The notes under the pieces were generated by a model that was given only the letters and a program-made list of their open reading frames with translations, was not told the DNA's origin and did no database searches. Shown here in pieces: positions 42,496 through 62,508 of a stretch of DNA of 64,000 nucleotides; the stretch's first letter is position 1, and each line of letters starts with the position of its first letter. The position numbers and the translations under genes are program-made. The stretch lies in the sequence record NC_041878.1. One strand, given 5' to 3'.

Positions 42496-42676
42496 TTGAC
42501 AAGTGAACCAGGATTATAGTACTATATAAGCAAGCCAGAGAAATGGCCTAGCCCACAGGGTGCGGAGATCCGTCTATTGCTTTTTATTTGAATTTTGGAC
42601 ACAATTCCGCACCCTGTGGGTCAAGGAGTTTCGCCTCCATGTAAAGTATTATGCCAGTACTGCGAACATAATGCAA
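42496..42676. repeat. convergent pair 1 of promoter-hairpin-CCCACAGGGTGCGGA element
   Basis: Plus core 42551-42567, minus core 42606-42621, each behind its own sigma70 promoter. Confidence 0.85.
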
Positions 42677-42703
42677 GGACTTTTTACGATTTTCTTTAAA
42701 AAA

Positions 42704-42846
42704 GTTTCCCCTTCTATATACGTATAAAGGAAGCGTTTAGAGCGTGTCAGATCCTGGGGCTTACAGTTTTGTACTTTATACTTTATAAAGCCGTGTAAAG
42801 CGTCCTATGCGTTCCTTGTACGTGTATACGTATATAGAGAAGGAAA
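42704..42846. repeat. long imperfect inverted repeat
   Basis: CTATATACGTATA 42714-42726 / TATACGTATATAG 42825-42837; AAGGAA/TTCCTT. Confidence 0.7.
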
Positions 42847-42936
42847 AGCCTGTTAGAAAGAATCTTATAAAAACTTATATAAAGTACTTGCAAAGGTTTT
42901 TTGGTGTGATAGTATTAATCCCGTCGAACAGGACAA

Positions 42937-42949
42937 CGCTCTTTAAAAA
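42937..42949 (+). promoter_or_regulatory. boxA-like antitermination element
   Basis: CGCTCTTTAAAAA about 16 nt after a predicted start site. Confidence 0.55.
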
Positions 42950-43052
42950 CTTGCTGGTGAATACTTAAACATGCCTCCAGGTACTTTGAAAAAAGAATCT
43001 GAGAGAATGAAAAAGTACTTGACAGCAAGAATAGAAAGTGTAGAATGTTCAA

Positions 43053-43225
43053 TATCGAAAGGCGGTAAGGTTCGCCGGATGGTAGGAAGCGGTAGCAGGG
43101 CGATAAAGTACTGCTACAGTGATAAGCCGGAAGTGCTATCACAGCGTTATAAAGGTTAACATAACTGTTAACGTCCTATCTACTGCCTTTTGATTCTTTC
43201 AGTACGGTAAAAGGTACGAAAGAAT
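43053..43225 (+). ncRNA. candidate multi-junction small RNA
   Basis: 13-bp closing helix 43055-43067/43181-43193 enclosing an inner helix and three hairpins; promoter TTGACA 43019/TAGAAT 43041. Confidence 0.6.
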
Positions 43226-43343
43226 AAAGATTCAGAAAGTTATCAAAAAGTACTTGACGGACTGAATCGCACGATGTAAGATGTTAAGTAAGCCGAGTGG
43301 CTAACCCAAAATTCAAAATTTAACTTTTAAGAAGGTATATATC

Positions 43344-44021
43344 ATGACTACTACTAACAACGCTAAAGCTACCAAAGTTACCCTGAACTCTATCGTTTTC
43401 GCTCCGGCTCCGGTACTGCGTGAACTGAAAGAAGGTGAAAACTACACCAAAACCGAACTGAAAGCCCACGAAAAAGAAATGGGCGAATATCTCCGCACCA
43501 CGTCGCACGATTTGGCGATGTACCTGGTAAACAAAACCGACAATACTGATACCATTGTCAAACTGTTTGCCGCTACCGCCGAAGCGATCCCTACAGTACT
43601 GGCCGAAGTACTGAAACAGCGTGAAGAAGAAGAAGCCGCTAAACAGGCTGAACGCGAAAAAGCGGAAGAAGAAAAACGTCGCCTCGCTGAACAGGAAGAA
43701 AAAGAACTGCAAGCGAAGAAAGATGAAATGCTTAAACACATGACCGATGTTCTGGGGCTGGATCTGGATGTTGCGAAAGCTGCGGTTGAAACGGTGGCGA
43801 AAAAGCTGAACGTTGGCAACCATACTAAAAACTCTTATGAGCGTGTAACCTGCACCATTGAAGGCAATCAGTACGATGTTCCGGTGCGTGGTAATATGTC
43901 TCAGGCACTGAAAGATCTGGCGGCGAAATATGGTTTCGCTGATGACCGCGATGGATTCATCGAAAAATTCCGCGATGAACCTGCAACTGCTGATGCTGAC
44001 AAAGATACCGCCGAAGCGTAA
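43344..44021 (+). CDS. putative H-NS/MvaT-like nucleoid-associated protein, highly expressed
   Basis: EVLKQREEEEAAKQAE..EMLKHMTDVLGLD resembles the H-NS oligomerisation linker; VRGNMSQALKDL resembles the AT-hook-like loop; optimal codons. Confidence 0.6.
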   Translation: MTTTNNAKATKVTLNSIVFAPAPVLRELKEGENYTKTELKAHEKEMGEYLRTTSHDLAMYLVNKTDNTDTIVKLFAATAEAIPTVLAEVLKQREEEEAAKQAEREKAEEEKRRLAEQEEKELQAKKDEMLKHMTDVLGLDLDVAKAAVETVAKKLNVGNHTKNSYERVTCTIEGNQYDVPVRGNMSQALKDLAAKYGFADDRDGFIEKFRDEPATADADKDTAEA

Positions 44022-44038
44022 TATCAAAAGTAATGCGG

Positions 44039-44060
44039 CAAGGGGGCTAGAAAGCCCCCT
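44039..44060 (+). terminator. GC-rich hairpin, probable terminator
   Basis: AGGGGGCT-agaa-AGCCCCCT; weak U tract. Confidence 0.6.
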
Positions 44061-44170
44061 GAGCCTTTCTAACAGTACTGTAATACCTTTCCTCAAAGTA
44101 CTATTAGAAACGCTTAGAATCAATCCTACAGCGTTTTAAGATGTATACTTATTAAGTGAGAATAAACGCT

Positions 44171-44440
44171 ATGGAACTAAAACCACTTTCTGAACTCCGC
44201 GATAAAAAAACCATTGTCGCCAGGACAATGATCCACACTTCCCCACGTCAAAAGGTTTTATCTGGCTATCTGGTTTTTGTGCTGGATGGTAAACTAATAC
44301 AACGTCGGATCTATGATATGGCCTATAATAGTACTTTTATGAGTGCTATGTATATAGTTTACAAAGGCGTTAACTATGCCGTAGATCTTGCATGTAAGAC
44401 GATTAGCGGGGCTTTCAGCGTCGAAACGTTGAAAGTATAA
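44171..44440 (+). CDS. early hypothetical protein
   Basis: TTAAGTGAGA leader; followed by hairpin terminator 44452-44482. Confidence 0.7.
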   Translation: MELKPLSELRDKKTIVARTMIHTSPRQKVLSGYLVFVLDGKLIQRRIYDMAYNSTFMSAMYIVYKGVNYAVDLACKTISGAFSVETLKV

Positions 44441-45305: not shown

Positions 45306-45486
45306 TTGACTTCGGTTGGCCTCTTATAGTACTATATTAATAAGCCAGAACAAAGGCGTGACCCACAGGGTGCGGAGATCCGTTCAGTGAAAAGATAATG
45401 AATTTTAGATATAACTCCGCACCCTGTGGGTTAAGGAATTTCGCTTCCATGAATAATAATATACCACTGCTGGAAAGTACTGTCAA
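45306..45486. repeat. convergent pair 2 of promoter-hairpin-CCCACAGGGTGCGGAG element
   Basis: Plus core 45361-45377, minus core 45415-45431. Confidence 0.85.
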
Positions 45487-45708
45487 GGAAAAAAACAGGG
45501 GAACTTTCATGTTCCCCCTAAATGCGACAAAGGCATATATCGGACTTTGTGCGAGCTTCGTTGATCGCATGAGTACTATATCACAACGGCCAGGCGAGTG
45601 CAACTATTTGATCTGTGATAAAAATATACTTTCAAACGTGAAAAGTACTTGCAAAGAATGATTAAAGGAGTATACTTAACTTATCGAAACGAACAAGAGG
45701 ATTTAAAA

Positions 45709-46491: not shown

Positions 46492-46567
46492 TTAAATTGT
46501 ATATAGTACTTGCAAAATTCTGCGAGTACTATATAATTACTTATATCTTAAACGGGAGAACAAAGAA

Positions 46568-47023
46568 ATGAAAGCTATCGAATTTGAACAGAAAGTAAGA
46601 GAATCCTTTTTGAAGTACTTCCCGAACGGGCATATTCGTTTATCTAAACTTGCTTTAGGTGGCGGCTTACATATTGCTTGCGGCCTGATTGCAAACGTTA
46701 AAGAGATCACCGCAACGATCAGACAAAACGACCCGTTAAACGTTTCTATCTTTATTCATGATAACTATGTATTCAATGATTCAGAAACGGATCTTGATAA
46801 TGTAGTACTTGAATTTGATAATTCTCATGTATCGGTTATTCCTGATAATCCGCACATGTACAGCCAATCGCACAAGATCGCAGCACGTAAAATTAACGCT
46901 GCACCAGAAAAAGCACTGGTAAACCTGGATAAGTATTTTAAACGTGTTAAAGATGTTGTCACAGAGCAAGCGGCATTAAACCGGATTATCAAACAAGATA
47001 CAATCGATCCTAAGTATCTGTAA
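46568..47023 (+). CDS. early hypothetical protein
   Basis: GGAG RBS, AGTACT-dyad promoter. Confidence 0.85.
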   Translation: MKAIEFEQKVRESFLKYFPNGHIRLSKLALGGGLHIACGLIANVKEITATIRQNDPLNVSIFIHDNYVFNDSETDLDNVVLEFDNSHVSVIPDNPHMYSQSHKIAARKINAAPEKALVNLDKYFKRVKDVVTEQAALNRIIKQDTIDPKYL

Positions 47024-47103
47024 AATTATTATCAAAAGTACTTGCAAAATGAATGCGAGTACTTTATAATAAAGTTACATTATTAATCAAGAGGAAGTAA
47101 CAA

Positions 47104-47229
47104 ATGGTCACTATCGAAAAAGTAAAAGAAATGCTGGAAGAACTCCGCGATCAGGGTTTTGTTGTTGCTGATACTGATGACGAATTAGAAGCAGCGGCAG
47201 AAATAGCATTGACCGTTTTAAATAGCTAA
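47104..47229 (+). CDS. small acidic protein (41 aa)
   Basis: GAGG RBS, own promoter; not in ORF track. Confidence 0.65.
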   Translation: MVTIEKVKEMLEELRDQGFVVADTDDELEAAAEIALTVLNS

Positions 47230-47301
47230 TTAAAAATAGTACTTGCATTAATTTGTGAGTACTATATAATTACTTATATCGAAACAGCGGAGTAACTTGC
47301 A

Positions 47302-47529
47302 ATGATTGAATTTCGCAGAACTATGGAAATGTCTATCACTATCACTGACCCACGTTATACTGAGAAAGAGATCGCGGAAGGGTTATCTGACGGCTCAATG
47401 AATATGGGCGAAGAAGATGGCGAAGATGCAGGAAAGATTTTTAATAGTGCATGGGATGAAATCGCTACTATTGATGATCTTCATGTATCGGATGTTATGA
47501 CGCCGGATGTTCAATTTTCAGTGATTTAA
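47302..47529 (+). CDS. small acidic protein
   Basis: GGAG RBS, own promoter. Confidence 0.75.
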   Translation: MIEFRRTMEMSITITDPRYTEKEIAEGLSDGSMNMGEEDGEDAGKIFNSAWDEIATIDDLHVSDVMTPDVQFSVI

Positions 47530-47602
47530 TTATCAAAAGTACTTTGACAATTTTGTTAGAGTACTTTATAATTAACTTACATTAAGCGAGAGGATTTTAA
47601 AA

Positions 47603-48025
47603 ATGTTACAAGTCAGAGGTTATGCGGAAGGTGGTTTCTGTTTCATGTTGGATGATAAAGCGGTATCAGTACATGAAGCATTATTAGCGAATGGGGGTAA
47701 GTTTCATAAGAGAACCATTAACGCTCTTAATCGTAATAACCTGGCGAACGAACAAGATCTGGCAGAGTTTGAAAAGCTGGTAAAGGTTTTACATACTGGC
47801 TTAGATGCCTTTAATGCTCGTAAAGTACTGCGTGATCATTTCAATATTGATGTATTGAAGATTGAGAACTATTATATTTTAACTAGTTCTGAAATTTATG
47901 ATCTCATGAAAGTATATGAGATCTGTAAGTACAAAGTAAGTGTAAAAAGTCCTGCACACTCAACGATGTACTATTTCTTTGAGTACTTAAACCGGAAAGA
48001 TGTTCGCCGCCTGGAAAGAACATAA
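47603..48025 (+). CDS. early hypothetical protein
   Basis: GAGG RBS, own promoter. Confidence 0.8.
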   Translation: MLQVRGYAEGGFCFMLDDKAVSVHEALLANGGKFHKRTINALNRNNLANEQDLAEFEKLVKVLHTGLDAFNARKVLRDHFNIDVLKIENYYILTSSEIYDLMKVYEICKYKVSVKSPAHSTMYYFFEYLNRKDVRRLERT

Positions 48026-48038
48026 TTCAAGAAAGGGG

Positions 48039-48118
48039 TTGACTTCGGTTAGCCCCTTCTGTATACTGTATTCATTGGCAGATAAAGCCGCAAGCCCATA
48101 GGGTGCGGAGGTATGTCT
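48039..48118 (+). ncRNA. promoter-hairpin-CCCATAGGGTGCGGAG element (single)
   Basis: TTGACT-N17-TATACT, GGC-AGATAAA-GCC hairpin, core 48094-48110. Confidence 0.7.
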
Positions 48119-48206
48119 GTAAGAATATAAATTTGAATAAAGTACTTGCAATCTATTTTAAAAGGCGTATACTTATCTATATCGAAACAACACAGAGGAA
48201 AACGAA

Positions 48207-48542
48207 ATGGAACAGACTACCCTGGTAAATGAAGATGCAATCATTGATTGTCTCCTGAATGTAATCCTTAACGCTGGCTATTGTGTAAGCGTGAATGATG
48301 GGGAATGTACTGTTATTAATCGCAGTACTGACAAAGAAGAGATTATGTCTGAGCTTCGCGGTACAGACAGCGATTGGATCAGAATTTATAAACCTGGTGA
48401 AGCCTACCATGTTGGATCTGTTGAACTGATTTACAACAATGGATCGGACGGATTAGATCTTATCAGTAATACAGCGGCAAGTGATTTAGAAGCCCTGGAT
48501 GAATTACTTATTCCAGTATATGAATTGATTGATACGCTGTAA
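48207..48542 (+). CDS. early acidic hypothetical protein
   Basis: GAGG RBS, own promoter. Confidence 0.85.
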   Translation: MEQTTLVNEDAIIDCLLNVILNAGYCVSVNDGECTVINRSTDKEEIMSELRGTDSDWIRIYKPGEAYHVGSVELIYNNGSDGLDLISNTAASDLEALDELLIPVYELIDTL

Positions 48543-48611
48543 ACATTATCAAAAGTACTTGCAATTAGAAAGCGAGTACTTTATAATGATTATATTAAAT
48601 CAGGAGGATAT

Positions 48612-48779
48612 ATGGACGAACTTTTAAAACTCTGGCAACAATTCAGTACTGTATCAGTTAACGATGATGATGAAATTGAAGAATCATTTTTGCACTTTGA
48701 AAAGGGAACAGACAGATTAGAAGTGTGGAAATGGTTTGAGAATCAGAATCCTGATTTTAAAGTATCTGATTTAGTTTAA
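48612..48779 (+). CDS. small protein (55 aa, FLHFEKGTDRLEVWKWFE)
   Basis: AGGAGG RBS; not in ORF track. Confidence 0.75.
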   Translation: MDELLKLWQQFSTVSVNDDDEIEESFLHFEKGTDRLEVWKWFENQNPDFKVSDLV

Positions 48780-48862
48780 TGTAAACATTATCAAAAGTAC
48801 TTTACTTATTTTGTAGAGTACTTTATAATGATTATAGTTAATTAAGAGAGAGGGTTTAAGAA

Positions 48863-49042
48863 ATGAAATTATATGCTTATGCGTCTAATAGTGGTGAAGC
48901 TATTGCAGTTGGTAGATCTGAGCGTGGTGCTAAATCTACTGCTACTAAAAACAAAAGTACTGAAATAGGTTATATCAGTACTATTAACAATATGTACATT
49001 CCTACTCATAAAAAAATTAATAATAAGTGGGTATCAATTTAA
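48863..49042 (+). CDS. small basic protein (59 aa)
   Basis: GAGGG RBS, own promoter; not in ORF track. Confidence 0.65.
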   Translation: MKLYAYASNSGEAIAVGRSERGAKSTATKNKSTEIGYISTINNMYIPTHKKINNKWVSI

Positions 49043-49114
49043 TGTATATAAGTACTTGCAAGTTATTTGTGAGTACTATATAATGATTGTACTTTAAGTG
49101 AGAGGAAAGAAAAC

Positions 49115-49486
49115 ATGAATCCAGTATATGAAATCCAGGCAGATATTTTCAACACGTTCTCTGAGATCGTTACACGTGGTCATGATGAGGAATCATACAA
49201 AAGAGAACAGGCCAGAATCCAGAATGATATTAACCGCCTTAAATTAGTGCGGGATCGTTATGCCTGTAATACTCTTATGACTAGCATGTTTTGCAATGTC
49301 ATGTTGCGTAAAATGTGCCTGGCTTATCGTTATGAGGGTATTCTTTATTGTACGGCTAATAATGTCCCTGGCCGTCCAAATACTGACTACTTACATACAT
49401 TAAACTTAACATCGGATCAATGGGATAGTTTAAAACAATTCCATGTATGGATCAGTACTGGCGATGTATACGCTCCAGTGCCTTAA
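49115..49486 (+). CDS. early hypothetical protein
   Basis: GAGG RBS. Confidence 0.8.
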   Translation: MNPVYEIQADIFNTFSEIVTRGHDEESYKREQARIQNDINRLKLVRDRYACNTLMTSMFCNVMLRKMCLAYRYEGILYCTANNVPGRPNTDYLHTLNLTSDQWDSLKQFHVWISTGDVYAPVP

Positions 49487-49532
49487 TTAACTATAGGGGA
49501 ACATTGTTCCCCTTTTTAAGTGAGATCCGCCT

Positions 49533-49787
49533 ATGAATATTTTTTATCAAACTAACAGGTTATGCGTTGCATTTGATTGTGATTCTGATAAAATACAATG
49601 CGTAATCTACCGGAAAGGAACGGCGGTATATGATAACTGGAAAGTACTACAATCATATACAATGCGGCGTAAAGGTTTTAAACGCCTGGATAATCGAACA
49701 CAGAAAGCGGCCTTGCGACAAATGATCAAAGCAATGCGGAACCGTCAAACAATGGCTTTAAACATTGCACTTAACAGTAAGGAATGA
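49533..49787 (+). CDS. early basic hypothetical protein
   Basis: TTAAGTGAGA leader. Confidence 0.7.
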   Translation: MNIFYQTNRLCVAFDCDSDKIQCVIYRKGTAVYDNWKVLQSYTMRRKGFKRLDNRTQKAALRQMIKAMRNRQTMALNIALNSKE

Positions 49788-49791
49788 TACA

Positions 49792-49950
49792 ATGATTCAT
49801 GATGTGGTTATTACTCTGACAGTACAATCTGATAATGAAGTACTGACTAACGACGAAATTATAAAGGCGATGGAAGAAAAACTATCCCTGATGAAAGCCG
49901 AACCGCAAATGGTTAAAGAGCTTGCGGAATCCGCAGAAGTGTTTGATTAA
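49792..49950 (+). CDS. small acidic protein
   Basis: AAGGA RBS. Confidence 0.65.
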   Translation: MIHDVVITLTVQSDNEVLTNDEIIKAMEEKLSLMKAEPQMVKELAESAEVFD

Positions 49951-49962
49951 TTAAAAAAGGGG

Positions 49963-50036
49963 TTGACATATGTTAGCCCCTTCTGTATACTGTATTCATT
50001 GAAATAAATTAGCCCACAGGGTGCGGAGATGTATCT
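49963..50036 (+). ncRNA. promoter-CCCACAGGGTGCGGAG element (5' hairpin degenerate)
   Basis: TTGACA-N17-TATACT; core 50012-50028. Confidence 0.65.
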
Positions 50037-50239
50037 ATTAAAAAAGTACTGTATACTTAACCAGTACCTATCAAATATAAATTCAAACGAAAAAAGTACT
50101 TGCAATGGATGATAAAAGGAGTATAATTGTTTACATGGAAGGGCAAGAGGTGAAAGGTAATGAGTCGCAGTACTGAAATAGTTCTGTTTATCTTTGTACT
50201 AGTAGCACTATCTATTAATTTTAATTGAGAGGATTCAAA

Positions 50240-50473
50240 ATGTCTTTATATGATGTAACTGTAAACAGTACTGGTATTGGTCGTTCTGGTACTACTAAGA
50301 TGCTGGCTGTTGCTTTCTTTCCTCATATGAATGAAGCAAGACAAGGTATCAATGAGTGGGTATCAGAGAACTTTGTTGCTCCGGTAACTGTGAGTGTTGA
50401 ATTAAAATCTCACTCAAATATTATCTATCCATCAGAAGTCCAGGGATATGAGCGTATTGTAATTATTGAATAA
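50240..50473 (+). CDS. early hypothetical protein
   Basis: GAGG RBS. Confidence 0.7.
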   Translation: MSLYDVTVNSTGIGRSGTTKMLAVAFFPHMNEARQGINEWVSENFVAPVTVSVELKSHSNIIYPSEVQGYERIVIIE

Positions 50474-50666
50474 TTCATTAAAAGTACTTTGACAAAATGG
50501 TTAGAGTACTTTATAATGTAGTTATTGAGTGGGGAGGAAACAAAATGCAATTTGTTTTCGGTGCAATTAGTGGTGTACTGATTTATCTGAATTGGGATGT
50601 TATCAGTCCCTGGATTGAATCAGTACTGAAATTTACATTAACCTTTTTTAATTGAGAGAAACAAAA

Positions 50667-50870
50667 ATGGCACAGAAAGATCGTCGTTATGCTATCGCTG
50701 CTGAGTTCACTGGTCACGCTTCTGGTAAGAAACGTTTTGTACTGCGTTTTGAAGGTACTCGCGTATCCGATCATGGTTCCCGTTATGAAGCGGAACAGGA
50801 GATCGCGAAGTACAAGAAAGCGGGTACTATCCCTAACGTGAATGGTTCACGTTTGCTGGTGGAGGCGTAA
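50667..50870 (+). CDS. early hypothetical protein (EFTGHASGK motif)
   Basis: GAGAG RBS. Confidence 0.75.
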   Translation: MAQKDRRYAIAAEFTGHASGKKRFVLRFEGTRVSDHGSRYEAEQEIAKYKKAGTIPNVNGSRLLVEA

Positions 50871-51046: not shown

Positions 51047-51124
51047 AAAAACATTATCAAAAGTACTTGCTAATAGAATGCGAGTACTTTATAATGTACT
51101 TATATTAAGCGAGAGAATAAAGAA

Positions 51125-51708: not shown

Positions 51709-51764
51709 TTACAAAGTACTGGTGAAATATCCAGTACTGTTTTTATGTACAGTACTATATCCAT

Positions 51765-53870: not shown

Positions 53871-53943
53871 ACATTATCAAAAGTACTTTACTTAATTGAT
53901 AGAGTACTTTATAATGATTACATCAAATAATGAGGAAATTGAA

Positions 53944-54267: not shown

Positions 54268-54653
54268 AAACTTACGAACAACTGAAAGGTGTAGCTGGTA
54301 AGATTGTTGACAACATTCAAAAGAACAGAATCAATGAAGCAGTATTCACTACTGTAACAGGCCGCAAAACTAAAGCTATAGAGTTGGGTACTTTGGTCGG
54401 TATGGTATCTGCGGCATGTTGTGAACGCAAGATTGATACTGCGATCTTGGAATTGTACTTGCGTAATGTTCATGGGTTTGAATATCGCGGTGTCCGTAAC
54501 ATGAGCAATGCAATGTTGGACGCATACGCAATTAAAGTACTTTCACATTGTGGTGATAAAGTTTTACGGTCTGGACACTTCAAAAAGATTGAAGAACTCG
54601 CCGCACAAAATACACCAGTAGATGAAGCAGCAAAAATCATCTTAGCAATGTAA
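54264..54653 (+). CDS. early hypothetical protein
   Basis: ATGA-type overlap. Confidence 0.75.
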   Translation: MKTYEQLKGVAGKIVDNIQKNRINEAVFTTVTGRKTKAIELGTLVGMVSAACCERKIDTAILELYLRNVHGFEYRGVRNMSNAMLDAYAIKVLSHCGDKVLRSGHFKKIEELAAQNTPVDEAAKIILAM

Positions 54654-54724
54654 TTATTATCAAAAGTACTTTGACAAATAAGTTAGAGTACTTTATAATG
54701 ATTATATTCAACGAGGGGAATATA

Positions 54725-54916
54725 ATGAGCAAACAATTTACTCATGCACCAAAAGCTGGTGGTGGTTATGAAATCATGTTCGGTAATAATGTGATCGATA
54801 GTGCTGATACTTTAAAAGAAGCACGTAATAAAATTGCAAAGTTCAAACGTGAAATGAAATTTTCTAATCTGGTGAATAAGTACTTTAATTATTCAGACAA
54901 CTTAAAGAAAAAATAG
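54725..54916 (+). CDS. small basic protein
   Basis: GAGGGG RBS. Confidence 0.7.
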   Translation: MSKQFTHAPKAGGGYEIMFGNNVIDSADTLKEARNKIAKFKREMKFSNLVNKYFNYSDNLKKK

Positions 54917-54978
54917 CTTGCATCACTCGTAATTATGAAGTATAATCTTTACATCAACCACTAAGAAGGAACAACAAA

Positions 54979-55365
54979 ATGTTTACTACTCATTACTTTG
55001 AAACAAGAACCCTGGCTCGTAACAACGTTGCTGTACTGAACGGTAAATTCAAAGACTTCGGTACTGATGCACCGAAAGGCCAGCGTTGGGCTGTATTGGT
55101 TGAAGCACAAGAAGCACAACCAGTGCCGGAAGTCAAAGAAGAAATTAAAATCGAACAAGCAACAACTGATAATTCTTCTGTCAGTACTTCCATCAAAGAT
55201 CTGCATGTTGCCGCCATTGCAAATGCTATGCCAAACGTATCCTTTACGCCAGGTATGAAACGCCGCGACGATCTGAAAACGCCTAATGGTAAGCCTGTAC
55301 GCCTCATGGTACGTCGTTCGATGGTGGCTGTACGGTTGGCTCAACATATGGCTAACTACGCTTAA
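54979..55365 (+). CDS. early hypothetical protein
   Basis: AAGGA RBS; followed by hairpin terminator. Confidence 0.8.
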   Translation: MFTTHYFETRTLARNNVAVLNGKFKDFGTDAPKGQRWAVLVEAQEAQPVPEVKEEIKIEQATTDNSSVSTSIKDLHVAAIANAMPNVSFTPGMKRRDDLKTPNGKPVRLMVRRSMVAVRLAQHMANYA

Positions 55366-55484
55366 AATTCGATTGGGGGCTTATATGCCCCCATAATTAA
55401 GTAAGGATAATACCATATGCCAATTACTCCAGTTGTTTTGTTAATTGTGGTGTGTATAATAATTTTTATATTGTTGAGGCCGCG

Positions 55485-55727
55485 ATGAAAAAGATGGTAA
55501 TTGATAATACACAATTACGCATACACTTTAAAGCAAGTACTAAAGTACTGGACAAAGCATTAAGGGTTGTGCGAGAATATACAAAAGGTGAAGTTAGACC
55601 GAGGCGATTAGGTTGTGGATTGTTTGAAGTACTGGACGTTTCGCATAATGAGCGAATCGTAATTCAAAACAGTAAACTTAACTTAATGACTCATGAACAA
55701 TATAATAAGTTCGTTGAACGCCGTTGA
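55485..55727 (+). CDS. putative ParE-like toxin family protein
   Basis: RPRRL..LFEVLDV..ERIV..LMTHEQYNK resembles the ParE-like toxin family C-terminal (L/V)M(T/S)HE.YN. Confidence 0.5.
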   Translation: MKKMVIDNTQLRIHFKASTKVLDKALRVVREYTKGEVRPRRLGCGLFEVLDVSHNERIVIQNSKLNLMTHEQYNKFVERR

Positions 55728-55783
55728 CATAATCCCCTAAATATGATTATAATAAATTTATAGTCATTAGGGGATTTTTTATT

Positions 55784-56302
55784 ATGCCAGGAACATTCCG
55801 CAGTAAAAATAGTGCTACCCTAGCAGGTCACTCTGATAAATGGAGTAACTCTAATCGTAGTGCGTCAAGTCATGATGCTGGTCAAGGTAGTAGAGGAAGC
55901 CGAAACCAGGGAACAGGTATTCAAGGGAAACTAAACACTATGCCATCACAAGGCGTAGACACTTCCAAAATGAAACCAGAAGAAAAGTTAAAGTACTTTA
56001 AATCGTTGGGGTTAATGCCTGGTGCAGAACCTACACCAGAACCAGAAGTACAACCTGAACCAAAACCAGAACGTAACAAAGTACAAGCATTAACGCAAGA
56101 CCTACAGAAAGTATTTGCTAACACTCCAAACTATCTGCATAGTATTGTACAGCAGCTTAAAGAAGTGCCACCAGCACAATTTAAAAAAGCTGTATTCGCG
56201 GCGTATCGTGCAATGCAAGAAGCTACAGCACAAGCAAACGTAGATCCTAAAGCAGTACTTAAACATATAGAAGATGCAATTAACCAAAGTATCTACGATT
56301 AA
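55784..56302 (+). CDS. hypothetical protein with disordered S/G-rich N-terminus and PE linker
   Basis: RBS AGGGG inside a long hairpin (55731-55776) that contains TAAATA. Confidence 0.85.
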   Translation: MPGTFRSKNSATLAGHSDKWSNSNRSASSHDAGQGSRGSRNQGTGIQGKLNTMPSQGVDTSKMKPEEKLKYFKSLGLMPGAEPTPEPEVQPEPKPERNKVQALTQDLQKVFANTPNYLHSIVQQLKEVPPAQFKKAVFAAYRAMQEATAQANVDPKAVLKHIEDAINQSIYD

Positions 56303-56365
56303 TATTTGACAGTACTCAATTCATCTGATAGTATTAAGTTATTCCAAACAACAAGGTACTATCAA

Positions 56366-56704
56366 ATGAAAAGAATTTTATTAGTCGGACTTCTGTTTGC
56401 AAGTACTGTTAACGCTCAAATGTTAACTTGCTCTAACAGTACTCTTTCTTTTCGTAATAACGATGGAAGTTATAGCGAAAAGGTAGCAACAAAACTTTCA
56501 AACATCAACGTAGAAGTACTGGAACAAGCTATAACGTTCTATGCTGGTGGAATTGATAAACTGGAATTTTGGAAAGATTACAATGAGTATCGTAATGATA
56601 CTGGTAAGGTAGTTCGCTCAGGTGATACTTTTTCATTGTATACCACTATTCCAACTGATACAAATAAAATGCAGCCTGTTAAAGTTGATTATGTCTGCAA
56701 ATAA
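56366..56704 (+). CDS. putative exported protein
   Basis: Signal peptide MKRILLVGLLFASTVNA. Confidence 0.8.
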   Translation: MKRILLVGLLFASTVNAQMLTCSNSTLSFRNNDGSYSEKVATKLSNINVEVLEQAITFYAGGIDKLEFWKDYNEYRNDTGKVVRSGDTFSLYTTIPTDTNKMQPVKVDYVCK

Positions 56705-56718
56705 ATTCAAATAAAAGG

Positions 56719-56798
56719 TTGACTTCGGTCGGCCTTTTTTGTTATACTTACTTTATTGGCAGATAAGCCGTTAGCCCATTGGGTGCGGAGTTATGTCA
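56719..56798 (+). ncRNA. promoter-hairpin-CCCATTGGGTGCGGAG element
   Basis: TTGACT..TATACT, GGC-AGATAA-GCC hairpin, core 56774-56790. Confidence 0.7.
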
Positions 56799-56946
56799 TT
56801 TTTAAGTACTTTCTATTTTGAAAATATTATACAAAAACTTATAAAAAGTCCTTGCAGATAATTCTGATTCTGCTATTATAACCACATCAAGACGGGGCAA
56901 CGTCTTAGAAAACAAAATTCAAATATTAAGTGAGAGGCAGTACAAA

Positions 56947-57294
56947 ATGACTAAATCAATCAAAGTTAAAGCTACTAAATCAGTTCAGGCAAACAACGTA
57001 GAAAACATTAAAAGACTGCCTATTGGTACTGTAGTAGTTCATAACTATGGTGAGTTTACCCACGGTGTAATTGTAGGTCATGCAGAACATGCTTACCAGG
57101 TTTATTTTAGTGCTGATATGTCACCGATGCTTCCAAAGTATCAGGCTAATACCGATGAAGCAATTAAAGCACGTATGCGTACTATTACCCTGGGCAAAGG
57201 ATTCTTTGTAAGTCGCTTCAAAACAATTGAAGCAGTTCGTGAAGCACAACGCAAATATAAAAATCGTGGTCTGGATCTCGAATCAGCAGCGTAA
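56947..57294 (+). CDS. early hypothetical protein
   Basis: GAGG RBS. Confidence 0.8.
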   Translation: MTKSIKVKATKSVQANNVENIKRLPIGTVVVHNYGEFTHGVIVGHAEHAYQVYFSADMSPMLPKYQANTDEAIKARMRTITLGKGFFVSRFKTIEAVREAQRKYKNRGLDLESAA

Positions 57295-57384
57295 TTGAAT
57301 TTAAAAAGGAGTTGACAACAGTTGGCTCCTTTGCTATACTACCCATAAGAACTTAATTGAAGTACTTTTTAAAGGCATATCATC

Positions 57385-57603
57385 ATGAGAAACATTTTAG
57401 AAGAACTCCTTAAAGAACCAACCGAAGAAGAAATGCAAGCCAGTGCAGTACTGCGTGATCTCTGTATTCAAAATGAGCTTGAGTTTCCTGAACAATTGTT
57501 CATGTTGCAGTATTTTGCAGGTATTGAACCAGGTCTGATCGTTTCAAAGGTGAACGCATTAAACACGCCTTTGATTGAAAATGCAATACACGTAATGCAC
57601 TAA
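57385..57603 (+). CDS. small acidic protein
   Basis: After terminator-promoter cassette 57305-57340. Confidence 0.7.
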   Translation: MRNILEELLKEPTEEEMQASAVLRDLCIQNELEFPEQLFMLQYFAGIEPGLIVSKVNALNTPLIENAIHVMH

Positions 57604-57620
57604 TTAATTCTACAAAGTAC

Positions 57621-57698
57621 TTGACTCCGGTTGAGTACTTTAGTATTATATATTCATTGGCAGATAAGCCGTTACCTACAAGGTGCATAATTGTATCT
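57621..57698 (+). ncRNA. promoter-hairpin-CCTACAAGGTGC element (compensatory variant)
   Basis: TTGACT-N17-TATTAT; CCT/AGG replaces CCC/GGG. Confidence 0.65.
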
Positions 57699-57811
57699 GT
57701 ATAAAAGAAAATATAAATTCAAATAAAAAACTTGCATTTATCCGTCAGTACTGTATAATGATTTACATGGATTAGGGAATGGCCTTAATCATTTTAAGTG
57801 AGAATACTATC

Positions 57812-58381
57812 ATGAAATTTGAAGAACTGAACGAGCAACAAAAAGCTAGAGCACTTGACAAACATCGTTATATTAACGTTGATTATGACGAATGGCATGA
57901 TTTTGTCAAAGACGATCATCATTCGAAACTGGAAGCCGTTGGTTTTGAAGGCGTAGAGTCGCGTTACAGTGGTTTTTGTTCCCAGGGCGACGGGGCAAGT
58001 TTTCTTGCAAGTAACGTTGACATTGAGAAGTTTCTGCGTTCACAAAAACGTTGGACGCATTATCGTGCCTTGCATGAGTTTATTCGTATCAATGAGATCA
58101 CGGCGAAAGTAGTTGCGTTACCTTCTCATTACGTACACTACAATACAACTCAAGCGGAGTTATCAGGCGATTGGTATATTGATTTTACTCCTAAGCAGGA
58201 AGCACTATATAAAGAACTCGAAGAAGAGATCGACGCATATATCACACAAGCGGGTAAAGATTATTACGCTGATCTTGAAACTGCGTACTACGATCTTACC
58301 AGTGACGAACAAGTAGAACAAACAATCATCGCGAATGATTTAGATTTTGAAGAAACAGATCATTCAGTAACTTATCTTTGA
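57812..58381 (+). CDS. conserved mobile-element protein (YSGFCSQGDGASF motif)
   Basis: TTAAGTGAGA leader; motif recalled from ICE/phage proteins loosely annotated as antitoxins. Confidence 0.7.
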   Translation: MKFEELNEQQKARALDKHRYINVDYDEWHDFVKDDHHSKLEAVGFEGVESRYSGFCSQGDGASFLASNVDIEKFLRSQKRWTHYRALHEFIRINEITAKVVALPSHYVHYNTTQAELSGDWYIDFTPKQEALYKELEEEIDAYITQAGKDYYADLETAYYDLTSDEQVEQTIIANDLDFEETDHSVTYL

Positions 58382-58585
58382 CAAGTACTAAAACTTTATG
58401 ATATAGTACTCGCATAGAAAAAAACACGAGCAAACAACTATGCGAGTACTTAAATCACATAACGATATAATTTTCGCTACTTATGGCGATTGTTATATGG
58501 TTAAAAAAGGGAGGATGAAAATAGTTTGTAATAATCCCGTAATTGCTTTATACTATTACTGTAAACTTTTAAGTGAGAATATAAA

Positions 58586-58918
58586 ATGAGAAAACCTAAC
58601 GTAGAAATTCTTTGTGATTCGCATCATGGTGTACATATCCCGTCCATCATGATTCAACGTCTGGTAGATGCAGGTTGGCGAAACATTCCCGCCGATGCCG
58701 TAGAAGTACTTTCTTCCGTAGACAATGAAGGTTATTGGGATTGTTGGGAAGAAGTACTTAACAATGCAGAATGGCATGATGCAAGTACTGGTCAAGTATT
58801 CAAGTTGCACCAGGACGGCGATCTGTTTGCTTATTGCAAGGATAGTATGACTCCGCAAGAGTATCATCATATGTTTGGTGAATATCCAGACTGGTACAAT
58901 CAGGAAGAAGAAGCATAA
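58586..58918 (+). CDS. conserved phage hypothetical protein (DSHHGVHIP..W.CWEEVL..QDGDLF)
   Basis: TTAAGTGAGA leader. Confidence 0.8.
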   Translation: MRKPNVEILCDSHHGVHIPSIMIQRLVDAGWRNIPADAVEVLSSVDNEGYWDCWEEVLNNAEWHDASTGQVFKLHQDGDLFAYCKDSMTPQEYHHMFGEYPDWYNQEEEA

Positions 58919-58935
58919 TTAAATTTAAAAAGTAC

Positions 58936-59015
58936 TTGACTCCGGTCAGGTACTTTGCTATTATGTATACATAGCAAGAACAATGCTTTAGCCCATAGGG
59001 TGCAGGAGTGTAGTT
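58936..59015 (+). ncRNA. promoter-hairpin-CCCATAGGGTGCAGGAG element
   Basis: TTGACT-N17-TATTAT; AGCA-AGAACAA-TGCT hairpin; core 58991-59008. Confidence 0.7.
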
Positions 59016-59127
59016 ATAGTATAAGGATGTAGTACTGAAAGAAATATAAAGTTAAATGAAAAATTCCCTTGCTTTCTTTCTTTCGTGTGGTATACTTTAG
59101 TTATTGAAACAGAGCGGAGTTTGAAAA

Positions 59128-59370
59128 ATGTCTAAATCAGGAATCGAATTTAAAGTGCGGAAATGGTCTGAGCATGGTGCAAGACGCCCATTCGATGTAG
59201 TAGCACTGGATCACGACAACAACAAACAGCACTACCAGCCAGGCTGCACTTTCAGTACTGAGGATGGGGCAGAGCGTCACGCTCAAGTACTGGCACAGCG
59301 TATTAAAGACAATGCAAACACTATTAAGTTTATTCGTGATTGCTGGCCTGTAGACGGCGGGATCGAATAA
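59128..59370 (+). CDS. early hypothetical protein
   Basis: GGAG RBS. Confidence 0.75.
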   Translation: MSKSGIEFKVRKWSEHGARRPFDVVALDHDNNKQHYQPGCTFSTEDGAERHAQVLAQRIKDNANTIKFIRDCWPVDGGIE

Positions 59371-59449
59371 AAATTCAAATGAAAAAGTACTGGACAATCT
59401 AAGTTTAGTACTTTATAATTTAAATACAAAACGAATTGAGGAACTGATT

Positions 59450-60337
59450 ATGTTGAAAATGTATAAAGGTATCAATGGCTTGGCACTGAAAGCTAACCGT
59501 CCACTGAACAGAACTGAACTGTTAGAAGTTGTACCTTCAATTTTCGCTATCGAAGGGCATTCTTCACGTAGTTCACGTTTTGCACCAGTTGCTACTATCG
59601 ACGTGGTAGACCGCCTGGCACAAGAAAACTACTTCCCGATGTACGCGATTCAATCGCAGACTCGCGATGTATCTAAACGTGATTATACTAAACATATGAT
59701 CCGTTTTCGTAAGCCTGGCGATCGTGAAGGTGAAGCAAATGAAATCATCCTGGTTAACGCCAACGATGGTACAAGTGCGTATCAGTTAATGGCAGGTCAA
59801 TTCCGTTTTGTTTGTTCGAACGGTTTAGTTATGGGTGAAATGTCTCATAACACTAAGATCTACCATAAAGGTACTGACATTATGGATGATGTTATTGAAG
59901 GCGTTTATACAGTAGTTAAAGACTTTGACGAAATCGAACGTTATAAAAAGGAAATGAAACAGATCCAGTTAAGTACTGCACAACGTGATTCATTCGCAAT
60001 GACGGCGTACATCATGAAAGAAGGTTTACCAGAAAACGGTGATTGGGCGAATGCTGTATATCAACCACGTTTGTTACTTTCTGGTAAAGATCTTAACACG
60101 GATGATCGTTATGATAACAGTCTGTATAGTACTTTTAACACTGTACAGCAACACATGATGGCTGGTGGTCAGCGTGGATATAACCCGCAAACTGGTCGCC
60201 GTCGCTCAAGCCGTGAAGTAACTAACATCGATAAAAACATCGAACTGAATAGTAACTTATGGAAAGCTGCAATGAACATGGTTGACCAGTACGATTTACT
60301 GAAAAACGCAGATCCAGAAGAGATTCTGCAATTTTAA
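59450..60337 (+). CDS. DUF932-family protein
   Basis: RSSRF...RDYTKHMIRFR...EIILVNANDGTSAYQLMAGQFRFVCSNGL. Confidence 0.9.
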   Translation: MLKMYKGINGLALKANRPLNRTELLEVVPSIFAIEGHSSRSSRFAPVATIDVVDRLAQENYFPMYAIQSQTRDVSKRDYTKHMIRFRKPGDREGEANEIILVNANDGTSAYQLMAGQFRFVCSNGLVMGEMSHNTKIYHKGTDIMDDVIEGVYTVVKDFDEIERYKKEMKQIQLSTAQRDSFAMTAYIMKEGLPENGDWANAVYQPRLLLSGKDLNTDDRYDNSLYSTFNTVQQHMMAGGQRGYNPQTGRRRSSREVTNIDKNIELNSNLWKAAMNMVDQYDLLKNADPEEILQF

Positions 60338-60412
60338 AAGCTAAAAGGGGTTGACAATTGGTTAGCCCCTAAGCTATACTCATATCTGACAAGTAAACGG
60401 AGTAACGGAACC

Positions 60413-60751
60413 ATGAGCATGAATTTTTTCATCATGACCAATACAACGAAAGACGGTCACACAGAGTACGGCAATACTGAGTATGTAATTGTAGGGCAGG
60501 ATCGTTTAGGTCGCCGTTACCGTCTGGATTCATCAGCATTGACGAACGCAGATAAAACTGATCGTGAATGCCGTGATATACAGAACCGTCGCATTATGCG
60601 TATGCTTCAAAGTATCGCGTATGGTCAGAAGGTCGATCTTAATAACTGGACTGAGATCGAACCAGCATACGAATCTGAGGCTTTCTATAAGTTAGATACT
60701 AAGAAGCGTATCACGCTGGAACAAAAACACGTTGAGATGTACGGTGTTTAA
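60413..60751 (+). CDS. early hypothetical protein
   Basis: GGAG RBS after cassette. Confidence 0.75.
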   Translation: MSMNFFIMTNTTKDGHTEYGNTEYVIVGQDRLGRRYRLDSSALTNADKTDRECRDIQNRRIMRMLQSIAYGQKVDLNNWTEIEPAYESEAFYKLDTKKRITLEQKHVEMYGV

Positions 60752-60954
60752 CTTATAGTACTGCAAGATCCATGCCAGGGCAACCAAATAACGGTTGCCC
60801 TTTTTTGTATTCAGCGTATAATAAATTTCGGTTAAATGTTGATTTATATCAAGTTTCTTATTGCAGGTTTTGTAAATCATGCTACGGTGCTATTGACAGA
60901 TTAGGAGTAGTCTGAGATAATAGCCCTACGTTGAGCGAAGCGAGTAATAATAAT

Positions 60955-61185
60955 ATGATCAGTGTTGGCAGCAGTGAATTAGAAGCATTAAAGATCCGTT
61001 GGTATCAATTAGCCATTGACGGCAAGCCAGTTATCGGAGAAGATAAGAAGTTGTTCGACTCTTTAAACTGTTACGTACAGGACGAATTAAAAAAGGCATA
61101 TCTCTTAGGCGTTGGCGACGAACAAGAAACCTGGATGATACCACAAAATCAATCCAGTACTAATAAAGTTAGTCAAAAACAATAA
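60955..61185 (+). CDS. small protein, paralog of 62077..62253
   Basis: RWYQL..LFDSL..ELKKAY..G. Confidence 0.7.
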   Translation: MISVGSSELEALKIRWYQLAIDGKPVIGEDKKLFDSLNCYVQDELKKAYLLGVGDEQETWMIPQNQSSTNKVSQKQ

Positions 61186-61268
61186 TCCAAATTCTTCTAA
61201 AAAGGGTTGACTTAGGTTAGCCCTTTTTGCTATACTCTTTTTACACCAACAAATAAGAGTACTTGACA

Positions 61269-61616
61269 ATGTTAGACATTTATATCAGAAGTGACTTAGT
61301 GCCAGATGGTTGTGATGAATGCGGTACTCCAAAAGAAAAAACAGAGTACTACATTATTGCTGAATCAGAAACCGGCCAGCGTCTTAGATTAGAAAGTGTT
61401 TCCATTGTGAACCGCGATTATACGGATGAACAATGTGAAGCGTATCTTCAACCAACTGTAGATAAAATTAAAAATCATTTAGCTGGTGGCGGTAAACTTA
61501 ATCCTGATTATTGGTGCGAGATCGATCCACGTTACGGATCTAAACGTTACCAGGATTTAGATAGTACTGGCTTCTTCTATCAACGCGAGAAACGCGAAGA
61601 TACTTATCGCGATTAA
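61269..61616 (+). CDS. early hypothetical protein
   Basis: After cassette 61201-61236; PRYGS motif. Confidence 0.75.
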   Translation: MLDIYIRSDLVPDGCDECGTPKEKTEYYIIAESETGQRLRLESVSIVNRDYTDEQCEAYLQPTVDKIKNHLAGGGKLNPDYWCEIDPRYGSKRYQDLDSTGFFYQREKREDTYRD

Positions 61617-61815
61617 GTAAACACCAATTCAAGATAATTTCGAGTACTTGACAAATCAAATACCAGTACTCGAAATTTTCATTTAGTGATCAGCAGTTGT
61701 CTAAATTTTCGTGAGTGCGTGAACGTGTATACGAATGCGTATGATATGTGCGTTATATACTTGCATATGTATCTGTATACGTGTATACTATCTATAATGA
61801 ATAAGGAGATACAAC

Positions 61816-62007
61816 ATGACCAAAGCACAGTTTGAAAGTAAAGTCGATGATGTTATCAACTTAGTAACTCATTCCAGTATCACAATACCAGCAGCAGTTG
61901 AAAAGGTATGCGGCGAACCCATCAATAAAGAGAATAGCGAACTGCAATTCTCATTACAAGATGCAGTTGAAAAAGAATTGCATCCTGAATGGTGGATTAA
62001 ACAATAA
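61816..62007 (+). CDS. small hypothetical protein
   Basis: TAAGGAG RBS. Confidence 0.75.
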   Translation: MTKAQFESKVDDVINLVTHSSITIPAAVEKVCGEPINKENSELQFSLQDAVEKELHPEWWIKQ

Positions 62008-62076
62008 ACTTTGTACTTGACAACTATATATCAGTACTGATATACTAACCACACATTAAGCGAGAAAGGAAACATC

Positions 62077-62253
62077 ATGGTACAGGTAGATTTGTCAGAA
62101 CTCAGAACGAAATGGTACAACCTGGGGAAAGCGGGTACTGCAATTGCTGGTACTGATGCAGAACTGTTTAACTCACTCGATCCGTGGCAAAAACGGGAAC
62201 TCCGCAACGCCTACGTTGAAGGAACTACGGAAGCCCTTTCAACCGTAGCATAA
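62077..62253 (+). CDS. small protein (58 aa), paralog of 60955..61185
   Basis: AAGGA RBS; KWYNL..LFNSL..ELRNAY..G; not in ORF track. Confidence 0.75.
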   Translation: MVQVDLSELRTKWYNLGKAGTAIAGTDAELFNSLDPWQKRELRNAYVEGTTEALSTVA

Positions 62254-62328
62254 CTCTAACAGGCTATCTTATCATAAAAGTGTTGGCAAAGTCCAGCACT
62301 TTTTTTCGTTTTGAAGCAAAAAAATTCC

Positions 62329-62508
62329 TTGACCTTCCCTGCGATATTTGAGAGAATACCTACAAGCCAGAACAAAGGCGTAGCCCACCGGGTGCATAGG
62401 CACGTCCAAAATTCAGTACTCAAATTTTAGATAGATCTCCGCACCCTGTGGGTCAGACCGTTACACCGGTTTATGTACTTATTATACATCAACCACGAAT
62501 CAATGCAA
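62329..62508. repeat. convergent pair 3 of promoter-hairpin-core element
   Basis: Plus core 62383-62395 (CCCACCGGGTGC), minus core 62437-62453. Confidence 0.85.

Follow-up and report, generated by a model that had tools for sequence, protein, structure and literature searches.

A candidate promoter-proximal two-hairpin RNA module in the terminal repeat of phage vB_PcaM_CBB and in other RaK2-like jumbo phages

The promoter-early stem-loop (PeSL) cassettes of T4-type phages join a stem-loop to a sigma70-type early promoter and recur in many places among small early genes that have no known function (PMC2839356; PMC4122927). A similar combination, with the stem-loop in some copies only, characterizes a module that occurs 12 times in the DNA analysed here, a stretch of 64,000 nucleotides from sequence record NC_041878.1 (the window), which is 100% identical to the right genome end of the Pectobacterium jumbo phage vB_PcaM_CBB (hereafter CBB; KU574722.1, 378,379 bp). 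PeSL cassettes coincide with some of the indel boundaries that separate close relatives, and the module may do likewise. PeSLs end in the Shine-Dalgarno sequence and start codon of a gene, whereas the module instead has a transcribed two-hairpin segment of ~50 nt and usually a second promoter, which places it outside the PeSL definition at the Shine-Dalgarno/ATG end. Moreover, six of the 12 modules embed the -35 element in the stem-loop, while the PeSL stem-loop lies upstream of the promoter, and modules also occur antisense, without any gene, and in face-to-face pairs.

Antitermination elements offer a second comparison. The models are lambda nut with N, HK022 put, and lambda Q at PR' with its short terminated PR' transcript. 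Like nut, put and qut, the module is promoter-proximal, contains hairpins and recurs at the start of several early units within a single phage, and one of its hairpins is conserved in shape while another part is conserved in sequence. The loops of its first hairpin (HP1), at 6-8 nt, share with the GNRA-like pentaloop of boxB only a G-N-R-N-A-A likeness, and in contrast to nut and put its position is fixed at +2, in twelve copies of which some are antisense. The put RNA consists of two extended stem-loops of ~70 nt that bind RNA polymerase, with stems much larger than those of the module, whose two 4-bp hairpins fit within ~35 nt.

Two further systems resemble parts of the arrangement. Stem-loops at the very 5' end of E. 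coli mRNAs protect them from 5'-end-dependent decay, which is the basis for the role proposed below for HP1; as in stabilizers of the ompA type, the HP1 hairpin lies within 1-2 nt of the predicted 5' end and its pairing rather than its sequence is conserved. Those are leaders of single genes, however, whereas HP1 belongs to a larger conserved multi-copy module. ColE1 RNA I/RNA II, R1 CopA/CopT and phage 186 pR/pL have facing promoters and complementary RNAs, each with 5' hairpins, as do, by prediction, the paired modules; in CBB, however, both partners are copies of the same module and no controlled target is evident, and their spacing is constant in CBB and the phage GAP32 but longer, with a central palindrome, in other genera. 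A further comparison is offered by phage PA5oct of a related clade, whose long terminal repeat is highly transcribed early and yields two abundant non-coding RNAs of 236 and 451 nt, found by RNA-seq and reportedly similar only to phage MIJ3 (PMC7318152). By analogy, the module would work most like a mixture of a PeSL-type terminator-promoter cassette, a 5' stabilizer hairpin and a nut/put-like recognition leader.

We read the module, with moderate confidence, as a 5' module acting at the level of RNA, in which a protective hairpin is combined with a site for a factor. That it is an autonomous early transcription unit, with the RNA itself as the trans-acting product, is a reading that falls a little short of probable. 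Its chief competitor is a leader that acts in cis, through antitermination or on mRNA stability.

Twelve copies in the terminal repeat and relatives in other phages

Positions 41545-64000 of the window are the right-hand copy of a direct terminal repeat (DTR) of 22,456 bp, annotated as 'redundant repeat' 1-22456 in KU574722.1, and positions 1-41544 are the end of the unique part of the genome; a window position equals the record position plus 41544 (window 42000 is record 456). The repeat was inferred from doubled read depth and pulsed-field gels, in a study that predicted 18 RpoD-like promoters in CBB, three of them within the repeat, and left a conserved transcribed element unmentioned (PMC5259590). 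A covariance model (R1), built from the 12 CBB copies with two helices for HP1 and the second hairpin (HP2), was run over the whole window with filters off. It returned exactly 12 matches of 48-66 bits, the next best reaching 11.8 bits, and all 12 lie in the 22.5-kb repeat, with none in the other 41.5 kb. The 16-nt core CCCACAGGGTGCGGAG, searched as a string with up to three mismatches, gave 10 matches in the window where 0.07 were expected; two more diverged copies, at 57675 and 58992, were outside these and were picked up by the model.

A first-pass annotation of this DNA, made from the letters alone, had described twelve copies with a shared order of parts, each behind a sigma70 promoter. 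The model recovers the same twelve, on the same strands and within 1 nt in position, and a -35/-10 pair stands upstream of every one, as a consensus match. The annotation had also proposed a search of phage genomes with such a model, and this yields 10-13 copies in most of the related jumbo phages scanned.

GAP32 (Mimasvirus) has 13 matches, in a block at 3763-23636 of the 40 kb read; Serratia phage BF (Eneladusvirus) has 12, at 971-18696 of 35 kb; the Erwinia phages pEa_SNUABM_12 and pEa_SNUABM_50 (both Eneladusvirus) have 12 each; Klebsiella phage KP13-7 (Alcyoneusvirus) has 11, at 12407-30217 of 45 kb; and the unclassified Erwinia phage Hallingskeid has 12, at 959-19999 of 45 kb. E. coli phage fEgEco12 (Asteriusvirus) has 10, at 1082-19595 of 30 kb. 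Seven matches are present in the first 9 kb of Yersinia phage fHe-Yen9-03 (Eneladusvirus), seven in Xanthomonas phage XbC2 (Mimasvirus by its record label) and one in the unclassified Xanthomonas phage XaC1; both Xanthomonas phages have GG, not GC, after the core. Copies are also borne by RaK2 and four metagenomic jumbo contigs.

The number per phage stays near 12 (12, 13, 12, 12, 12, 11 and 12 in seven loci including CBB, plus the 10 of fEgEco12), and in each phage the copies occupy a single block of ~18-20 kb of the DNA read, a terminal-repeat or early block. The terminal repeat of fEgEco12 measures 20,993 bp, as confirmed by restriction digests (PMC13070987), and its module block falls within it. 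Order, orientation and number of the copies are kept across genera whose flanking DNA no longer aligns. Judged by these matches, the module family is common to all RaK2-like jumbo phages tested, those of enterobacteria and of Xanthomonas alike.

Outside this group the module was not found in the searches made. The exact 16-mer occurs in 77 viral contigs, of which only the jumbo-phage contigs pass the model while the other 60-odd fail. A 24-nt pattern with 18 specified bases gave 12 scattered single matches in cellular genomes of unrelated taxa, which is the chance level, and none had a promoter or HP1. Rfam 15 at gathering thresholds recognized in the window only four tRNA genes of the unique part (Cys, Met, Met and Ala; 4422-6172) and no family for the module; at E<=10 in the repeat, the only models over the modules were those of microRNA precursors on the inverted pairs, at 29.6 bits against 107 required. 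A literature search found neither the core motif nor a transcriptome of these genera. The multi-copy, promoter-coupled family of the first-pass annotation is thus real, and its absence from Rfam holds up. As far as the searches reach, it is a phage promoter-proximal RNA module or small RNA undescribed in these databases and in the literature.

Promoter, hairpins and the evidence for pairing

All 12 CBB copies share one order of parts: a -35/-10 pair, HP1, a linker of 3-5 nt, HP2 (R-CCC, loop, GGG-T), GC, about five variable bases and a tail. The details were read from a corrected set of 90 non-identical copies from CBB and its relatives; an earlier set of 109 regular-expression entries had counted copies with 4-nt loops twice. 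Upstream of all copies is a promoter that matches the sigma70 consensus, TTGAC(A/T)-N17/18-TAnnnT, with TTGACT or TTGACA as the -35 in 80 of 90 and a spacer of 17 or 18 nt in 84 of 90. In seven phage loci, all 84 matches to the model have such a pair upstream at a fixed distance, and the distance from -10 to core is a constant 26-27 nt.

HP1 is a hairpin of 4-5 bp, found in 88 of 90 copies with 31 different stems. It begins exactly 8 nt past the -10 hexamer in 68 of the 88, at a position marked by a conserved CA(T/A); the predicted start is therefore the A, with HP1 running from about +2. Its loops are of 6-8 nt and mostly of the form G-N-R-N-A-A (GCGAAA in 35 copies, AGAACAA in 11, AGATAA in seven and GAGAAA in five). 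All the stems that the first-pass annotation had listed are seen (GCCA/TGGC, GGAG/CTCC, GGAA/TTCC, ACCG/CGGT, AGCA/TGCT and GGC/GCC), as is its degenerate copy, which lacks HP1 at 50013.

The stem of HP2 is CCC/GGG in 89 of 90 copies and CCT/AGG in one, in a set gathered with a pattern that requires CC[CT]...[AG]GG, so that this invariance is partly built in; a model-based alignment shows the same picture. The loops come in 13 sequences of 3-4 nt, with one of 5 nt in the model alignment, and the closing pair is A-U in 49, G-U in 34 and U-U in seven. The loop variants (ACA, ATA, ATT, ACC), the A-U or G-U closing pair and the compensatory CCT/AGG double change at 57675 bear out the first-pass description. 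Past GGGT, position 5 is G in 94% and position 6 is C in 90%, positions 7-11 vary, and the tail is conserved at T12, T/C14, A/G15, C17 and T20 before it fades into A+T-rich sequence after ~22. The near-invariant core had been drawn to include GCGGAG: R-CCC, loop, GGG-U and the GC stand, but GGAG occurs in only 28 of the 109 entries (~90 different copies). The CsrA/RsmA-like site proposed for GGAG is accordingly not supported as a feature of the family, and GGAG was likewise dropped as a Shine-Dalgarno sequence or RegB-type site. A mini open reading frame in the tail (ATG TAT CTA TAA type) was also rejected as a general feature, with NTG in 58 and ATG in 25 of the 109 entries and no usable Shine-Dalgarno spacing.

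Selection on HP1 pairing in the single strand is supported by comparison of the copies. In the alignment of 84 hits (71 distinct rows) fitted to model R1, all four HP1 pairs have changed on both sides, among GC, UA, CG, AU and GU. Their covariation scores 0.374, where shuffles give 0.149, none of 500 shuffles reaches the observed value, slid controls are all far lower, and double-change cells number 76 against 26.6. An independent hairpin search of the raw 23 nt gave a score of at least 9 in 88% of copies and in 27% of shuffles. The first pair keeps its position while the stems differ, as in GCCA/TGGC (CBB, GAP32), ACAAA/TTTGT (BF) and GTCA/TGAC (KP13-7). The first-pass proposal that selection acts on single-stranded structure is thereby upheld. 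No third helix common to all copies and no tail-core pairing emerged from mutual information or from RNAalifold on 77 sequences; an alternative fold of the HP1 3' arm with GCGG is possible in some copies only.

The same observations bear on a reading of the module as a signal in DNA, where the core at +22 to +37 would be an operator or roadblock for a phage-encoded repressor acting on very early promoters, or a promoter-proximal pause or middle-promoter box with the tail as its -10. The fixed distance to the promoter suits such a signal, as do a core conserved as sequence, which forms a small palindrome, and a tail consensus that equals TATAAT in many copies. HP1 covariation, however, has no reading at the level of DNA. 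The loop of HP2 varies from 3 to 5 nt and its single stem change is compensatory; a stem that stays fixed while its loop changes in sequence and length suits a hairpin more than a rigid site in double-stranded DNA. Only 51% of copies have the last T that would be decisive for a -10, on which count the tail was rejected as a true -10. A signal in DNA is quite improbable.

Upstream, the promoters are often combined with a further stem-loop. Six of the 12 CBB copies place the -35 in the 5' arm of a 9-12 bp hairpin that has a loop of TTCG or TCCG, includes G-U pairs and is flanked by A-rich and T-rich sequence; the copy at 45402 on the minus strand has a terminator upstream of it, and the other five have no stem-loop. 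The hairpin that embeds the -35 looks like the terminator of the upstream gene fused to the next promoter. Fused hairpin-promoters also occur without the two-hairpin element, at 60351-60380 and 61207-61236 of the window, and because they do, the element appears to be a separate add-on and the terminator-promoter a module of its own.

Three modes of deployment and a possible function of the RNA

The copies are deployed in three ways. This goes beyond the first-pass annotation, as do the restriction of the copies to the terminal repeat, the unvarying 37 nt between the cores of paired copies and the family's spread through all RaK2-like jumbo phages tested, with ~12 copies each. In the first mode, six of the 12 CBB copies form three face-to-face pairs with cores at 42552+/42620-, 45362+/45430- and 62384+/62452-. 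Pair 1 consists of module 1+ (42496-42580, plus strand; TTGACA-N18-TACTAT, HP1 GCCA/TGGC, then HP2 and tail; 63.0 bits) and, facing it and seen as an inverted repeat, module 1- (42592-42676, minus strand; TTGCAT..CATAAT, HP1 GGAG/CTCC; 61.2 bits). Pair 2 joins module 2+ (45306-45390, plus; -35 on the 5' arm of a terminator-like, TTCG-looped hairpin, HP1 GCC/GGC; 58.5 bits) to module 2- (45402-45486, minus; TTGACA-N17-TATATT, preceded by a minus-strand terminator at 45518-45497, HP1 GGAA/TTCC; 66.3 bits). Pair 3 is made up of module 9+ (62329-62412, plus; TTGACC..GAGAAT, HP2 loop ACC; 53.5 bits) and module 9- (62424-62508, minus; TTGCAT..TATAAT, HP1 ACCG/CGGT; 59.1 bits).

The gap from core to core is exactly 37 nt in CBB and GAP32, and every genus has pairs at corresponding places. 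A longer gap, with a palindrome of the AATGAGAATGATAATCATTCTCATT kind inside it, separates the partners in BF, KP13-7 and Hallingskeid (BF 1025-1053; KP13-7 12463-12484 and 13899-13931; Hallingskeid 19377-19398 and 19915-19943), and this palindrome may resemble the box of a host iron regulator. Paired promoters are ~130-150 bp apart, and the predicted RNAs overlap by ~110-130 nt. These three convergent pairs would suit a replication primer or R-loop origin, for which T4 origin promoters and ColE1 RNA II/RNA I would be the models and in which the pairs would serve as sense/antisense control; so would the position within the terminal repeat and the succession of promoter, structured RNA and A+T-rich stretch. 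Twelve copies are many for origins, however, and the A+T-rich stretch belongs to the next promoter as its upstream element. An origin is the remotest of the alternatives.

The second mode comprises five same-sense singles (cores at 48095, 50013, 56775, 57675 and 58992), which have no terminator and are followed 35-80 nt on by a second promoter of the type ATTATCAAAAGTAC, TTGACA or TTGCAA, N8, GAGTACTT, TATAAT, and then by a short leader, a Shine-Dalgarno sequence and ATG. Module 3+ (48039-48123; 55.3 bits) precedes a second promoter at 48145-48173 and gene CBB_15, and module 4+ (49963-50041; 57.6 bits), in which HP1 is missing, precedes a GTACTG..CAGTAC hairpin and a second promoter at 50100. 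Module 6+ (56719-56803; 49.5 bits) has its -35 in a hairpin, HP1 GGC/GCC and HP2 loop ATT; module 7+ (57621-57703; 48.4 bits) shows the CCT/AGG double change in HP2 and has a second promoter ~30 nt past it; and module 8+ (58936-59020; 51.4 bits) has HP1 AGCA/TGCT and a core followed by GCAGGA. For all eight plus-strand copies, the second promoter lies 35-330 nt and the next start codon 88-400 nt downstream, which agrees with the first-pass remark that no open reading frame follows directly and that the next gene has a promoter of its own.

The same-sense copies invite a reading as a cis-acting mRNA leader, with HP1 stabilizing long early mRNAs and HP2 and the tail as a handle for later inactivation by a phage protein or nuclease. 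HP1 lies at +2 and is conserved in structure only, the five singles and three pair members stand upstream of same-sense genes, and the AU-rich tail directly follows a G+C-rich hairpin. Yet such a leader explains the same-sense copies alone, leaving aside the pairs and the antisense copies with terminators, and the genes have their own promoter with short leaders. Furthermore, GGAG, the target of T4 RegB-type nucleases, is not conserved, and RegA/RegB have not been reported for CBB. A leader for mRNA stability or later inactivation is rather improbable.

In the third mode, a single copy lies antisense. Module 5- (51708-51845, minus strand; 55.9 bits) comprises a promoter at 51845-51817 and the module at 51815-51761; downstream of these come a hairpin AGTACTGTACA..ACAG and, at 51738-51715, a bidirectional terminator hairpin. 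The predicted RNA of ~105 nt (106 nt as folded) has a minimum free energy of -29.1 kcal/mol (z = -3.55). With its own promoter, an intrinsic terminator and no conserved open reading frame, module 5- is the sole CBB copy with the make-up of a terminated small-RNA gene. The locus is kept whole in GAP32, BF, pEa_50 and XbC2; its 3' hairpin is identical in all five phages, whereas the 5' module has drifted in XbC2. Across the antisense singles read in five phages, seven of seven run into a terminator-type hairpin within ~25-45 nt, and six of seven also have a T-rich run. Predicted RNAs of ~105 nt from these singles make the RNA product without an open reading frame, as first proposed, plausible.

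Terminators bear equally on antitermination. As a cis-acting leader, the hairpins, alone or with a phage protein, would make the polymerase pass the terminators of the repeat, and the terminated units would represent the 'off' state. The element is promoter-proximal, with two hairpins, and repeated at the head of several transcription units; the repeat is rich in terminator-like hairpins (26 against 12 expected), one of which (49495-49513) lies directly before CBB_19, a gene with no promoter of its own in the scan; and the tail would sit where the polymerase is as HP2 leaves the exit channel. Against this, antitermination elements do not need the strict +2 position of HP1, the hairpins are of only 4 bp, and nearly every gene has a promoter of its own. 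Terminator-like hairpins open or adjoin the modules, as if units were insulated, and terminator-proof antisense copies would yield long antisense RNAs. The repeat's 51 proteins, to which this search is confined, gave no N-, Q- or NusG-like family with Pfam or PHROGs, and hence no cognate small, arginine-rich N protein. Antitermination is unlikely, though less so than the other alternatives.

The boundaries of homology between phages raise a further alternative, a mobile cassette of PeSL type whose conserved stretch persists mainly as a recombination substrate that shuffles genes, with no RNA function of its own. Homology between CBB and GAP32 ends at record position 6562, inside the core of module 3+, with different genes following in each phage, and it is also interrupted a short way upstream of modules 2+, 4+ and 8+; GAP32 has one extra copy adjoining an insertion, and the terminator-like hairpin with an early promoter is as in PeSLs (PMC4122927). 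In raw counts, one of ~34 alignment ends is located precisely in a core, and about four come within 100 nt of a module. However, the order, orientation and number of copies persist across genera with non-aligning flanks, the compensatory changes in HP1 mark selection on pairing that goes beyond homology, and hairpin-embedded promoters exist without the element (60351, 61207). That the module is only a recombination substrate is very unlikely.

Under the preferred reading, in which each copy is a transcription unit of its own and the RNA its product, the following course may be envisaged. Host sigma70 RNA polymerase would start early at the near-consensus promoter, as the consensus matches suggest. 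The transcript would begin 1-2 nt before HP1, which would bury the 5' end and shield it from 5'-end-dependent decay, while HP2, the GC and the tail (T.TA.C..T) would form the docking site for a single host or phage protein. As each repeat has ~12 units and a packaged genome has two repeats, the cell would be flooded in the first minutes with an RNA domain able to bind that factor, by way of titration or recruitment. Two forms of the RNA are expected. Copies ahead of a terminator would give free RNAs of ~105 nt, and those ahead of a gene promoter would supply the 5' domain of longer early transcripts. Early firing of the module promoters is inferred from the related phage PA5oct, because its repeat is highly transcribed early (PMC7318152).

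The RNA itself is favoured as the product because the antisense copies need no gene and end at terminators, because the same-sense copies precede genes that already have their own promoter and Shine-Dalgarno sequence, and because the copy number is held at ~12. Several points weigh against it. The face-to-face pairs are not specifically accounted for, and eight of the 12 CBB copies lack a terminator, so that their RNA, if left unprocessed, would be joined to mRNA. For every phage of the family, the start sites, ends and abundance of the RNA are predictions. The scans of the 51 repeat proteins found no RNA-binding family, and the binding partner is purely hypothetical. Folding energies of single copies are mostly no better than those of shuffles, as expected because the stems are only 4 bp; a strand comparison of G-U with A-C in HP1 showed no clear asymmetry either way; and the model and the regular expression both favour CCC/GGG in HP2, whose constancy in part reflects the search. 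The observation of the first-pass annotation is thus confirmed, and its interpretation is partly supported.

The surrounding repeat and meaning for RaK2-like phages

The repeat holds other features beside the modules. A second uniform class of promoters (ATTATCAAAAGTAC..GAGTACTT..TATAAT) has ~15 sites at 46510-61236 of the window (e.g. 47544, 48559, 49056, 50489, 51067, 53615 and 54671), with a Shine-Dalgarno sequence and ATG ~25-30 nt on; it precedes most small genes of the repeat and at five sites matches TTGACA-N17/18-TATAAT perfectly. There are 276 AGTACT palindromes throughout the 64 kb, 14-fold above the 19.5 expected, and they are often twinned at 21-22 bp, one abutting the -35 and one the -10 of the common promoter type (47037/47058, 48554/48575, 48796/48817, 49051/49072 and 50483/50505). 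Ten sites crowd at 41764-42149, in the non-coding start of the repeat. The pattern may reflect a promoter architecture peculiar to the phage, or a site for a factor.

The start of the repeat, ~1.2 kb at 41732-42970, has no annotated gene and contains pair 1. A 22-nt inverted repeat (42705-42726/42825-42846) and further inverted repeats lie in it, and 42188-43418 has ~76% DNA identity to Serratia BF and Erwinia phages; it is a candidate packaging or replication region. At pair 2, the open reading frame CBB_7 (45337-45510, minus strand) is probably not a real gene, because it crosses the palindromic pair and its minus-strand promoter. CBB_8 (45509-45661, plus strand), which begins just past the pair, within the terminator hairpin upstream of module 2-, is doubtful as a gene.

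Among the 51 proteins of the repeat, Pfam and PHROGs recognized only DUF932, Band_7 and ParE_like, with no RNA-binding or antiterminator family; CBB_37 (80 aa; 55485-55724, plus strand) has the ParE-like toxin domain (PF24732, E 2.7e-11). A minus-strand cluster of seven genes (35817-41085) adjoins the repeat boundary on the unique side; five of the seven have Kelch-repeat or Laminin_G_3 (lectin-like) domains, and the cluster may encode virion surface or 'hair' proteins.

RaK2-like jumbo phages are candidates for biocontrol and therapy, yet their early programme is a blank, with the 51 repeat proteins of CBB almost unannotated. A countable, conserved module marks one class of units transcribed very early, as well as how far the repeat extends, and so aids annotation and the definition of genome ends; the family merits an Rfam entry. 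As it includes a phage of E. coli (fEgEco12), expression can be followed in a standard laboratory host. Tentatively, the module may represent a new class of phage host-takeover RNA, of which ~24 promoter-driven copies per packaged genome would deliver a domain that captures or re-programmes a conserved host factor. If so, RNA polymerase, a decay enzyme or an RNA chaperone would be candidate targets, and the RNA would act from the first DNA entering the cell across the RaK2-like phages of enterobacteria and Xanthomonas. If the RNA does bind a factor of the host or the phage, takeover or control would here rely on RNA instead of protein, which is rare.

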